Sequence record: ON631220.1
Direction: 5' to 3' (one strand)
Length of the DNA: 64,000 nt
Numbering within the stretch: position 1 is the stretch's first letter; every line of letters begins with the position of its first letter. Positions 17,357 to 60,029 of the stretch are shown piece after piece. A program made the translations under genes and the position numbers. The notes under the pieces are model-generated. The model saw only the letters and a program-made list of their open reading frames with translations. It was not told the DNA's origin and did no database searches.

Positions 17357-18432
17357 TGGAACAATATCTTAATTCAATTCGTTTAGTTAAAGAACTCGGT
17401 GTACATAAAGGTGATCGTACTGGTACTGGCACCCAAAGCATGTTTGGTCAACAAGAACGTTATAGTTTACGTAACAACGTTCTACCCGTAGTAACCACTA
17501 AGAAAATTCATCTTCCATCCGTTATCCATGAATTATTCTGGATGCTTTCTGGTGATACTCGTGTAGATTATTTAATTGAAAATGGTGTACGCATTTGGAA
17601 TGAATGGGTTAAACCAAATACCGCGTTATATGCGCCGATGACTGATGAGGCCGTTCTCAAAGCAGTAACTACCCTCATTGGTGCCCCATTCGTAATGTAC
17701 GTCCATTGCATGAACGATGACTCTACTCCAATCATCGAGACTGTAGTGGAGTTCGAGTCGGGTATGGCCCCAGAGACTATTCAGGCTTTCTGGGATGAAC
17801 ATCCAGTTAACCGTGAGGAAATCCAATACGTCATTGGAGTTAGTGAAAAGTCGTGGAATAGGCTCGCTACTGAAGGATTCGATGAAGCCAAAAATCCTGA
17901 AGGTATTCATACTGAATATAACAAACGGCTGTATCGTGCTTTGACGCATAAAGAACCAGCACGCCTGGTCGGCGGCGATCTAGGTGCTGTTTACGGTAAG
18001 ACTTGGCGTGATCTTGAAGATACTCGTGTGATCCCAAAACACGAGTGGGTTGATTACGAGGCACGTGGCTTTGACTTCGTAGTTGATATTCCAGGTACTT
18101 GCATGGAGAATGATCGGTGTGTTGTTACTAGACGTATCGATCAGATTCAAGACGTGATTAATCAACTTAAGACTAACCCTGATTCTCGTCGGATCATCGT
18201 TTGTGCATGGGCACCACAACTTGTCGATGAACAGTCACTCCCACCGTGCCATAGCTTTTTCCAGTTCTGGACTCGTGAACTGACGTTAGAAGAACGGTAT
18301 GACTGGGCCCAACTTAATGACACCGAAGCTCAACGTATTTTCCTTGAAGGTGCGCAACCGGAAACTGATCACGCACTGTGGGATAAACTTGGTGTTCCTA
18401 AACGTGCATTGAGTTGCCAACTCTACCAGCGT
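17356..18432 (+). CDS. thyA: Thymidylate synthase, exon 1 (spliced product 459 aa)
   Basis: DRTGTGT, IHELFWML, PDSRR, catalytic LPPCH; ends at SCQLYQR. Confidence 0.97.
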
Positions 18433-19522
18433 TAAATACTAGCGCCTTCTAGGAGCAATCCTAGTCGAATAACCTATCTAAACGGGGAAACTCTCTATGA
18501 GACAATCCCGTGCTAAATTGACTACGGTCATAAATGCCTAACGACTATCGAAACCACTCTGAGAAGAGGAAGGGAGTAGAGTAGGACCAAGTGGTCCGAA
18601 AAGGTAGGGGTCTCTTTTTAAGAGATCGTGATATAGTCTGTCCTGCATGGAGACATGCAGCGGTTTACTTAATGACTCCGCCAGATAAGGAGGGTGTTAT
18701 TAATGACGTAGCTTATGTGTATTGCCTATTCACCAAAGAAGGAAAGGTATATGTCGGAAGTGCGCGAGATTTAGTTAAGCGCGTTCAACGACATTTCAGA
18801 GACCTTAGTAATTCCAAGCACCATAACTACCCATTACAACAAGAATACGATAACGGTGAAAGATTCTCGTTAAAGTACTATCGTTGTGAAAGTCGGGAAT
18901 CAGCATTTACACTCGAACAGATGTGGATAACCAAGCATGAAGAAGAAGGTAACCTTCTTAATATTGGTAGACACTCCAAGGGTGGTGATAACTTAACCAG
19001 GCATAACCTCAAAGAACAAATCATCGAGAAGCGGAGTGATACAATACGTATCAGACTTGATGAGATTGGAGCCGAGGCTCGTCAGGAAAAGTATGGTCGA
19101 CTAGGTGAGCAGAATGGGATGTATGGTCGTACTCACACAGAAGAAGTTAAGGTAGCTCTATCCGAGTTACACACGGGTAACACTTACCGTCTTGGCATTA
19201 AAGCTAGTGATGAGACAAGAGCCAGGATGTCGGAGATAGCTTCTCAGAGAACAGGCGAACGTAATCCATTCTACGGTAAAACACATTCCGAAGAAACCAG
19301 AAAAAAGTTGACGGATAACAAACGCGGTATAAAGCCAACTAACTCAAACAAACTTGAAGTGGACGGTGTTGTTTATTTATCCCAGGCCGATGCAGCTAAG
19401 GCTCTCGGAGTATCACAGGGTACAATAACATACCGAATTAACAGCAAGAATCCAAAGTATTCTGGTTATAAAGTCATTTAAGTAAACGGCTCAGGATTAA
19501 CGACCCTGGGTGAACATAAGAG
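18433..19522 (+). mobile_element. Group I self-splicing intron (1090 nt) in thyA
   Basis: P1 GCGU|UA-AAUAC-UA-GCGC with U.G at the 5' splice site; P/Q/R/S-like elements aaacggggaaac, aatcccgtgc, cctaacgactat, gtgatatagtctg; P9 ctgcatg-gaga-catgcag; terminal G19522; removal restores QR|SVD. Confidence 0.93.
18672..19481 (+). CDS. Intron-encoded GIY-YIG homing endonuclease with NUMOD3-like repeats and C-terminal HTH
   Basis: VYCLFTKEGKVYVGSARDLVKRVQRH; NPFYGKTHSEETRKKL; SQADAAKALGVSQGTI; looped out of a stem formed by 18659-18671 and 19479-19490; start codon uncertain. Confidence 0.9.
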   Translation: MTPPDKEGVINDVAYVYCLFTKEGKVYVGSARDLVKRVQRHFRDLSNSKHHNYPLQQEYDNGERFSLKYYRCESRESAFTLEQMWITKHEEEGNLLNIGRHSKGGDNLTRHNLKEQIIEKRSDTIRIRLDEIGAEARQEKYGRLGEQNGMYGRTHTEEVKVALSELHTGNTYRLGIKASDETRARMSEIASQRTGERNPFYGKTHSEETRKKLTDNKRGIKPTNSNKLEVDGVVYLSQADAAKALGVSQGTITYRINSKNPKYSGYKVI

Positions 19523-58431: not shown

Positions 58432-58721
58432 TATAGAAGTTCCTTTATTACAATGTAGTATATAACCTTTATTAAATTAGGTTATATACCGGCTATGGAA
58501 AGGCCTCGTCACCTTCCCTTCACCTATATTAAATATCAATAGTGGTTATAAAGAACGAGATACACTCATTGACATAATATAGCCAGGGGTGGCAAACCCC
58601 TGGCACTCAGACACACTCTATAATTAAATCTACCACCGAGTGTATTTAGTGGATAGCTTTAGGATTATCTAGATACAGTAATCCTACATAATATCATCGC
58701 ACTAGTATTTTTATCTTTAGT

Positions 58722-59783: not shown

Positions 59784-59807
59784 AAAGAGTAGCCGAAGCT
59801 ACTCTTT
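59784..59807 (-). terminator. Terminator of the tRNA cluster (UUCG on the minus strand)
   Basis: aaagagtagc-cgaa-gctactcttt. Confidence 0.85.
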
Positions 59808-59813
59808 AGAATT

Positions 59814-59900
59814 TGGCTGGTAAGGTAGGATTCGAACCTACGGTGGGCTTTCGCCAACGGATTAACAGTCCGCTCCCTGCTACCACTCGGGTACTTACCA
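59814..59900 (-). tRNA. tRNA-Asn(GUU), 87 nt, with long variable arm
   Basis: TGGTAAG/CTTACCA acceptor stem, G73, CCA; anticodon GTT; variable arm TGGCGAAAGCCCA. Confidence 0.9.
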
Positions 59901-59909
59901 ATGAAATCG

Positions 59910-59946
59910 TAAAAGTCACTTGCTCTACCGACTGAGCTATCACGGA
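59910..59946 (-). pseudogene. tRNA 5'-half remnant, truncated in the anticodon loop
   Basis: TCCGTGA-TA-GCTC-AGTCGGTA-GAGC-A-AGTGA-CTTTTA; no 3' half follows. Confidence 0.85.
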
Positions 59947-59952
59947 ATTAAA

Positions 59953-60029
59953 TGGCGCGCCCAAGGGGACTCGAACCCCTAACCACCCGCGTGACAGGCG
60001 GGTATTCTAACCAACTGAACTATGAGCGC
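59953..60029 (-). tRNA. tRNA-Asp(GUC)
   Basis: Cloverleaf, anticodon GTC, G73, CCA. Confidence 0.97.

Follow-up and report, generated by a model that had tools for sequence, protein, structure and literature searches.

The window analysed here is a 64-kb stretch of the genome of the Pseudomonas jumbo phage OMKO1 (ON631220.1), a relative of phiKZ, and matches that record at 100% identity over the same coordinates; statements about the whole genome are drawn from the OMKO1 GenBank record. At positions 59814–59900, on the minus strand, it carries a tRNA-Asn(GUU) gene with an extra, class II-like hairpin arm, 87 nt long with an encoded CCA (ARAGORN, Rfam and pair counts). ARAGORN places this gene in a minus-strand tRNA cluster that runs Leu, Pro, Met, Asp, Asn, with Thr further along, and a tRNA scan of the whole record returned six tRNAs, among which the extra-arm gene is the sole tRNA-Asn. 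The 7-bp acceptor stem begins with U1-A72 (U1 at 59900, A72 at 59818) and the discriminator is G73 (59817). The D arm has the form CCCG/AGUGGUAGCA/GGG, with GG in its loop; the 7-nt anticodon loop, CUGUUAA, contains U33 and the GUU anticodon (59864–59866); and a standard T arm combines a 5-bp stem with the loop UUCGAAU. The variable region (59842–59856) is 15 nt long and holds the hairpin GGC-GAAA-GCC (59846–59855), a 3-bp stem with a GAAA cap, identified from sequence, fold and covariation. A variable region of more than 10 nt that forms a stem-loop is a class II architecture, whereas the tRNA-Asn of the host genus, Pseudomonas, is a 76-nt class I molecule. A preliminary description of this DNA had drawn attention to an 87-nt class II-like body for an isotype that is normally class I in bacteria, and both observations hold. 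It had written the arm as UGGC-GAAA-GCC; the U is unpaired, and the stem comprises three base pairs. The gene scores 55.8 bits against Rfam RF00005 (gathering score 29), inside the range of 48.8–57.7 bits returned with the same model by the long-arm tRNAs of one Pseudomonas genome.

Folded as a single sequence, the tRNA forms a cloverleaf of unremarkable energy (z = −1.75), so support for this structure comes from comparison. In a set of 13 sequences (OMKO1, phiKZ, BRkr and ten IMG/VR contigs) the cloverleaf pairs in 99% of cells, and compensatory changes are seen in 13 of the 23 pairs, including all three pairs of the extra arm. None of 500 shuffles reached these values for pairing and compensation, and slid registers did not come close either. 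U1-A72 is constant in all 13 sequences while acceptor pairs 2–6 vary freely, and G73, the anticodon loop, the T loop and the CCA end are also conserved. For a wider set of 37 diverse members, MAFFT and RNAalifold reproduced three stems (acceptor, anticodon and T), but misalignment obscured the D and extra arms; extra-arm pairing in that set was therefore counted directly, and the 13-sequence subgroup was used for covariation. By direct count, the bases flanking the loop pair over a mean of 3.3 bp, compared with 0.77 in shuffles (maximum 1.57 over 2000 trials). The presence in OMKO1 of a tRNA-Asn gene with an extra hairpin arm is confirmed.

That this gene is a real tRNA-Asn is well supported. 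Asn identity resides in the GUU anticodon and G73, elements that can be transplanted between tRNAs (PMC9976931); G34-U35-U36 and G73 are all present, and the preliminary description had rightly read the isotype from them. Among 26 Pseudomonas genomes, asnS was found above the cut-off in none and gatB in all 26, which means that Asn-tRNA in Pseudomonas must arise via a non-discriminating aspartyl-tRNA synthetase (AspRS) and GatCAB. The U1-A72 pair is a determinant for GatCAB (PMC9976931), and its constancy throughout the phiKZ-type group fits this indirect route; the more distant relatives, which come from Salmonella, Serratia and Providencia phages, carry G1-C72 instead. Judged by these identity elements, the non-discriminating AspRS of Pseudomonas would read GUU and G73 and load Asp, GatCAB, which requires U1-A72, would convert the Asp to Asn, and the product would decode AAU and AAC. 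These codons are in demand: AAT and AAC together account for 68.5 per 1000 codons in the long open reading frames (ORFs) of the window compared with 32.3 in Pseudomonas loci, approximately a twofold difference, and AAT alone, at 55 per 1000, is among the most used codons of OMKO1. The remaining OMKO1 tRNAs likewise match phage-enriched codons. In RNA from phiKZ infections, assembled contigs of three Illumina libraries cover the tRNA together with the fragment upstream and run into the phiKZ flank, depth over the tRNA exceeds that of neighbouring genes in four of four runs, and one Nanopore contig contains a T run (poly-A on the RNA strand) that begins no more than 2 nt from the CCA end. phiKZ tRNAs have been observed by Grad-seq in 30S fractions, with ribosomal subunits (PMC8545117).

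An alternative is that another synthetase charges the tRNA, either the seryl enzyme, attracted by the long arm and G73, or the tyrosyl enzyme (TyrRS), attracted by a Tyr-like body, so that Ser or Tyr would be inserted at Asn codons. G73 combined with a long arm is indeed a feature of Ser identity, and Ser-type tRNAs with foreign anticodons exist, for example the allo-tRNAs (PMC5389517). However, the stem of the arm is just 3 bp, compared with the far longer variable arms of host tRNA-Ser, and the molecule does not qualify as a tRNA-Ser despite its G73. For TyrRS, as for the leucyl enzyme, G73 is a published antideterminant (PMC9976931). The gene is moreover the phage's only tRNA-Asn, and with AAT at the frequency given above, systematic misreading would harm every phage protein, while the relative of this tRNA in T5 restores translation when host tRNA-Asn is cut (bioRxiv 10.1101/2025.02.04.636281). 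We regard mischarging as extremely improbable.

The preliminary description had also proposed that the gene is a tRNA-Tyr converted by an anticodon shift from GUA to GUU with a change of discriminator. Its remark that the D arm resembles that of tRNA-Tyr is borne out: the D stem CCC(G)/(A)GGG (C10-C12/G23-G25, with G13) and A26 are the same as in Pseudomonas tRNA-Tyr. The variable region is also laid out as in tRNA-Tyr, with a single unpaired base before a 3-bp stem and small loop and then a linker of 3–4 nt, so that a tRNA-Tyr-type D stem and a short 3-bp variable arm are both present. The best canonical BLAST match outside the family is also a tRNA-Tyr, from an Acinetobacter phage, 80% identical over positions 9–77 with the same anticodon and T stems. 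Against these likenesses, GUU, G73 and U1-A72 stand where bacterial tRNA-Tyr has GUA, A73 and G1-C72, and the differences extend to the anticodon stem and to the D loop in its 3′ half; no fewer than four identity positions would have to change in such a recruitment (A36U, A73G and the two members of pair 1-72). The body resembles no tRNA in three Pseudomonas genomes, where BLAST gave T-loop matches only, and Pseudomonas tRNA-Tyr was rejected as a recent source on this ground. The close relatives are all tRNA-Asn(GUU) that already have the extra arm, in a family that is large, old and diverse and in which most D arms are not Tyr-like (our ranking of D-arm similarity uses crude scoring and is read qualitatively only). 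T5-like phages carry an extra-arm tRNA-Asn and a tRNA-Tyr side by side, and the two are dissimilar. Sequence comparison therefore does not support a recent anticodon shift from tRNA-Tyr, a scenario that we consider improbable; the extra-arm tRNA-Asn may still have a deep origin in tRNA-Tyr.

The relatives of the OMKO1 gene were sought in 50 697 phage records by BLAST. Near-identical copies occur in about two dozen phiKZ-like phages, and full-length matches were obtained at 97% identity in the BRkr/phiHQ group and at 90% in Psa21. More distantly related tRNA-Asn(GUU) genes, 83–85 nt in length, are found in a T5-like Salmonella phage, a T4-like Serratia phage and a Providencia phage; they have the same T arm and the same anticodon arm (except for position 32 in the T5 type) and an extra arm of 3–4 bp with a GAAA cap, but the acceptor and D arms differ. 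The 83-nt T5-type gene, with its extra arm, is present at full length in 280 phage records, T5_ev212 among them. We also made two pattern scans of IMG/VR, one of which demanded a GAAA loop; both demanded the sequence of the anticodon stem and neither demanded pairing in the arm. Combined, they yielded at least about 58 distinct extra-arm tRNA-Asn(GUU) sequences of 79–94 nt, in which the extra-arm loops are mostly stable tetraloops (GAAA, UUCG, GCAA and GUAA). Because the anticodon-stem sequence was demanded, C41 in these members is not independent evidence of conservation. The same patterns gave no match in 401 sampled gammaproteobacterial genomes, and the one match in 151 sampled genomes of the phylum was not a tRNA; as these genomes are samples, the type is better described as not found in bacteria than as absent from them. 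Our literature search found no discussion of an extra arm in phage tRNA-Asn, that of phiKZ included, though such a discussion may exist elsewhere. From its distribution in sequence databases, the extra-arm tRNA-Asn appears to be a widespread phage type, not found in the sampled bacteria and seemingly undescribed.

The closest described counterpart is the tRNA-Asn(GUU) of T5, which shares with the OMKO1 gene its isotype, anticodon, G73, GAAA-capped extra arm of 3–4 bp and position in a phage tRNA cluster, along with a near-identical anticodon arm and an identical T arm. It differs in having G1-C72, another D arm and U32, in serving a host that possesses an asparaginyl-tRNA synthetase, and in that no endonuclease cassette or broken class I gene adjoins it in the stretch examined. 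The extra arm of T5 tRNA-Asn is not mentioned in bioRxiv 10.1101/2025.02.04.636281, where the word ‘variable’ never occurs. Long variable arms on tRNAs whose anticodons belong to class I isotypes, as in OMKO1, have been reported in nematode nev-tRNAs (Hamashima 2016, as cited in PMC5389517) and in bacterial allo-tRNAs (PMC5389517). To judge from the account cited there, the nev-tRNAs and allo-tRNAs have Leu or Ser bodies and are thought to be charged by virtue of the arm, whereas the OMKO1 arm is short and the acceptor elements match the Asn anticodon.

Outside the tRNA-Asn genes, the OMKO1 tRNA is closest to tRNA-Lys(CUU) genes of 88–90 nt with a GAAA-capped extra arm, in Caulobacter phage CcrColossus (L006, 300–389), Ruegeria phage V10 (L008, 290–377) and Xanthomonas phage BUDD (L009, 283–372). 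Extra arms were also seen in IMG/VR on further class I isotypes, namely Ile(GAU), Pro(UGG), Lys(UUU) and Trp(CCA), of 86, 87, 88 and 87 nt (L201, L217, L189 and L214, respectively). This suggests, at the level of sequence comparison, that extra arms are not confined to the Asn isotype. A separate case is an 89-nt tRNA annotated as tRNA-Lys(CUU) on the 5.8-kb Escherichia coli plasmid NZ_CP032883.1 and about 13 similar plasmids (L338, 1454–1542). Its body is Ser-like, with a GGAGAGG acceptor strand, G73, a long variable arm and G37, and it is possibly a mistranslating or decoy tRNA carried on small plasmids.

Immediately upstream of the extra-arm gene, the OMKO1 locus retains the marks of an insertion, which the preliminary description, right about the feature, its Asn identity and its Tyr-like D stem, had overlooked together with the link to a homing endonuclease. 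The gene is preceded by a 9-nt linker, CGAUUUCAU (59901–59909, minus strand), and the linker in turn by a pseudogene fragment (59910–59946, minus strand). Sequence comparison identifies this fragment as positions 1–37, the 5′ half, of a class I tRNA-Asn of host type; it is identical to Pseudomonas tRNA-Asn over its first 26 nt, but a mutation has turned the anticodon into UUU. The linker forms the left end of a cassette, and the same junction is found at two paralogous sites in other phages, site A adjoining tRNA-Asp and site B about 2 kb downstream. PA7 has intact class I genes at both sites, and ANB1 has an intact class I gene at site A and no tRNA at site B. In phiKZ, site A is intact class I and site B holds a split gene with the cassette and a gene of the HNH type, the junction there being the one seen in OMKO1. 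In fMGyn-Pae01 the junction lies at site A, a composite with no HNH gene, and site B is intact class I; OMKO1 has the composite without an HNH gene at site A and no tRNA at site B. The cassette allele thus occurs at either site, depending on the phage.

The comparison of phiKZ with PA7 defines the insertion. The two are 99.6% identical and collinear but for a 772-bp insert in phiKZ, a presence/absence polymorphism at one exact site between close relatives. The insert interrupts the class I gene at its anticodon loop (36/37 or 37/38, with 1 nt of ambiguity owing to a shared A). It comprises linker, extra-arm tRNA and hairpin, then an ORF of about 186 amino acids and some 45 nt more. Directly after it the class I 3′ half resumes, with a T-loop G57U change and a stem mismatch with the 5′ half. 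Elsewhere the remnants vary: the BRkr group keeps both class I halves, with its own acceptor allele and with 8 nt of the gene missing; Psa21 keeps a diverged 5′ half only; and one IMG/VR contig has neither half. In Psa21, a distant phage, the D-arm part of the remnant (L004, ~1463–1490) is nonetheless intact, although a neutral sequence should have decayed; this may reflect gene conversion, insertions that took place independently more than once, or some function.

The insertion beside the anticodon, with an endonuclease ORF, recalls the group I introns of bacterial tRNA anticodon loops, but the phiKZ insert lacks an intron family match and canonical ends, and the broken halves are decaying. 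We rejected a group I or group II intron since a permissive scan matched no Rfam intron family and the insert has no terminal G and no GUGYG start. Resplicing of the class I halves into a tRNA was rejected for the BRkr group because of the 8 missing nucleotides, and is unlikely in phiKZ given the stem mismatch and G57U. The lack of an intron match, the decaying halves and the 8 nt missing in the BRkr group together indicate that function was restored by a second gene and not by splicing. Comparison of the phages shows that the extra-arm gene came on a cassette of about 0.77 kb (linker, tRNA, hairpin and HNH gene), which entered a class I tRNA-Asn gene of host type at its anticodon loop and, while ruining that gene, provided a substitute for it. 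OMKO1 has since lost the endonuclease gene and the class I 3′ half, probably by recombination between two similar hairpin-terminators. One of these lies 3′ of the extra-arm tRNA in OMKO1 (59784–59807, minus strand), a 10-bp hairpin with a UUCG loop followed by a U-rich stretch, read from the sequence as a likely terminator although a simple terminator scan did not flag it; the same hairpin stands 3′ of the intact class I gene in phiKZ. Recombination between such hairpins would leave exactly the OMKO1 state.

The ORF of the insert, annotated PHIKZ296 in phiKZ, is an HNH_3-family endonuclease (Pfam) that was found in only 16 Pseudomonas phage records and nowhere in the whole OMKO1 record. An HNH_3 ORF accompanies the extra-arm tRNA in phiKZ, the BRkr group, Psa21 and one IMG/VR contig, and lies 80–90 nt downstream of it in all 10 of the groups or records whose coordinates were compared. 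The simplest reading of this arrangement is a predicted free-standing homing endonuclease cassette that inserts into tRNA-Asn genes and provides the tRNA that takes their place; the different sequence of this tRNA gene probably renders its DNA immune to the enzyme. The nearest precedent is SegB, a free-standing GIY-YIG homing endonuclease of T4 and T6 that lies among phage tRNA genes and is co-inherited with them (PMC2330249, PMC13096335), and that in T6 has been linked to escape from tRNA-cutting defence (PMC2330249, PMC13096335). Unlike SegB, the enzyme of the phiKZ-type cassette belongs to HNH_3, and the cassette lies inside a tRNA gene and includes a structurally different replacement tRNA; the cleavage activity of the enzyme is only predicted.

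If immunity to the linked HNH enzyme were the whole purpose of the arm and the altered sequence, they would serve at the level of DNA only, and the arm would have no role in the RNA. In favour of this view, the tRNA is tightly linked to the HNH gene in four lineages of jumbo phages and lies within the target gene that was broken, and it is typical of homing cassettes to interrupt or substitute the site that they target. Yet the same architecture is found without a neighbouring endonuclease in hundreds of phages (T5-like, T4-like and many IMG/VR contigs), members that a purely DNA-level role cannot explain, and the covarying stem and stable tetraloop caps point to selection on the RNA fold. A role confined to DNA is in our judgement unlikely. 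Another reading is that the gene is a relic left behind by a mobile element, tRNA-like but in decay or without function, given the adjoining pseudogene fragment and the loss of the linked endonuclease gene from OMKO1. A perfect cloverleaf, with 99% pairing and compensatory changes between diverged lineages and with conservation of U1-A72, G73, CCA and both the anticodon and T loops, argues in the other direction, and decay is visible instead in the flanking class I halves; we hold the relic to be very unlikely.

Phage tRNAs are now regarded as counter-measures to bacterial defences that cut tRNA. To our knowledge, the escape changes described so far are point substitutions near the cut site. 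In the PARIS defence system of E. coli, the nuclease AriB cleaves three tRNAs between positions 40 and 41, tRNA-Lys and tRNA-Thr well and tRNA-Asn less so; UAAUC|A is the best site, and A41>C ‘substantially inhibits’ the cutting of E. coli tRNA-Lys. Full rescue from PARIS by T5 needs its tRNA-Asn(GUU) together with its tRNA-Lys and tRNA-Thr (bioRxiv 10.1101/2025.02.04.636281). The anticodon arm of the extra-arm tRNA probably equals that of E. coli tRNA-Asn, for which the AriB paper gives C40-C41; our BLAST against E. coli genomes retrieved no chromosomal tRNA-Asn. Class I tRNA-Asn of both Pseudomonas and phages reads UAAUC|A41 at this point, and the extra-arm tRNA UAAUC|C41. AriB recognition also requires contacts away from the anticodon loop (bioRxiv 10.1101/2025.02.04.636281), at which an added arm could interfere. 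The presence of the arm, its pairing and its stable cap are conserved while its sequence is not, which fits a steric or structural role. With its extra hairpin and its different anticodon stem (C41 in place of A41), the tRNA may be cut less readily than host-type tRNA-Asn by the host's tRNA-targeting defences; this is the least certain step of the proposal, and by analogy with the T5 case nuclease escape, which the preliminary description had raised, is a plausible reason for the arm. Another substitution at the same site is found in the phage tRNA-Thr(UGU) (51762–51838 of the window, minus strand), which reads UAAUG|C (G40-C41) where the host reads UAAUC|A (C40-A41); on sequence grounds it may be a further escape change.

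Taken together, these observations make it likely that the OMKO1 gene is a working tRNA-Asn(GUU) of a phage lineage, furnished with a stable extra hairpin, charged indirectly and borne on a cassette, with an arm that perhaps shields it from nucleases. Several points weigh against this interpretation. The D loop has 10 nt, with extra residues of the 20a/20b type, compared with 8 in host tRNA-Asn, which could hinder GatCAB, for which U20a of tRNA-Asp is an antideterminant (PMC9976931). The RNA evidence consists of assembled contigs from phiKZ runs, blind to level, ends and charging, and counts as support only. phiKZ keeps an intact class I copy at site A alongside the endonuclease, so that destruction by the enzyme does not extend to all class I tRNA-Asn genes of the genome that encodes it. 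As regards escape, the anticodon loop is the same as the host's, so nucleases that read the loop alone would still cut; AriB-type DUF4435 proteins were found in only 5 of 81 sampled Pseudomonas genomes; and the specificity of PARIS is known for one E. coli system only.

The upstream neighbour of the extra-arm gene in the cluster is tRNA-Asp(GUC) (59953–60029, minus strand; ARAGORN and Rfam). Just downstream of the cluster, an interval of OMKO1 at about 58432–58721 lies between the homologues of PHIKZ298 and PHIKZ297; in phiKZ the PHIKZ298 3′ untranslated region is the source of an abundant non-coding RNA of about 100 nt by Grad-seq (PMC8545117). Elsewhere in the window, Rfam matches a group I intron at 18423–18660 (69.4 bits). 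Among the relatives, ARAGORN predicts a tRNA-Gly in Psa21 (L004, 1132–1209) that the record does not annotate; it lies between the genes for tRNA-Pro and the extra-arm tRNA-Asn, and its anticodon, ACC, is unusual. The T5-like tRNA region of Salmonella phage Shivani includes, near its extra-arm tRNA-Asn, gp159 (L180, 14915–15349), a 144-amino-acid protein annotated as ‘tRNA amidotransferase’; the tRNAs of this record are annotated on the strand opposite to the ARAGORN calls.

Two features appear to be undescribed in the literature that was searched: the extra-arm tRNA-Asn as a widespread phage type that the bacterial samples did not yield, and, in phiKZ-like phages, its carriage on an HNH cassette by which a tRNA-Asn gene of host type is split. 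Each belongs to a familiar theme, the one of phage tRNAs that evade defences and the other of homing endonucleases in tRNA clusters, such as SegB. Genes of this kind are hidden by annotation pipelines, which label them simply ‘tRNA-Asn’. Their architecture also raises the question of the extent to which a tRNA-Asn with a class II body is accepted by AspRS, GatCAB, EF-Tu and the ribosome. OMKO1 has been studied as a therapeutic phage, which gives practical value to knowing its anti-defence genes. For the phiKZ group, the locus suggests a route by which the extra-arm gene spreads, as a cassette that breaks the ordinary gene and brings the substitute. More broadly, a class of phage tRNA-Asn, and apparently some tRNA-Lys, -Ile, -Pro and -Trp, with an added hairpin points to a structural escape route. 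A more ambitious view, which we put forward tentatively and think less likely to be correct than wrong, is that tRNA and HNH gene form a self-sufficient homing cassette that replaces the tRNA-Asn of rival phages with a defence-resistant version, and that hairpin addition is a general phage strategy. If this were true, a short stable hairpin on class I tRNAs (Asn, Lys, Ile, Pro and Trp) would represent an undescribed strategy of phages against tRNA-targeting immunity.

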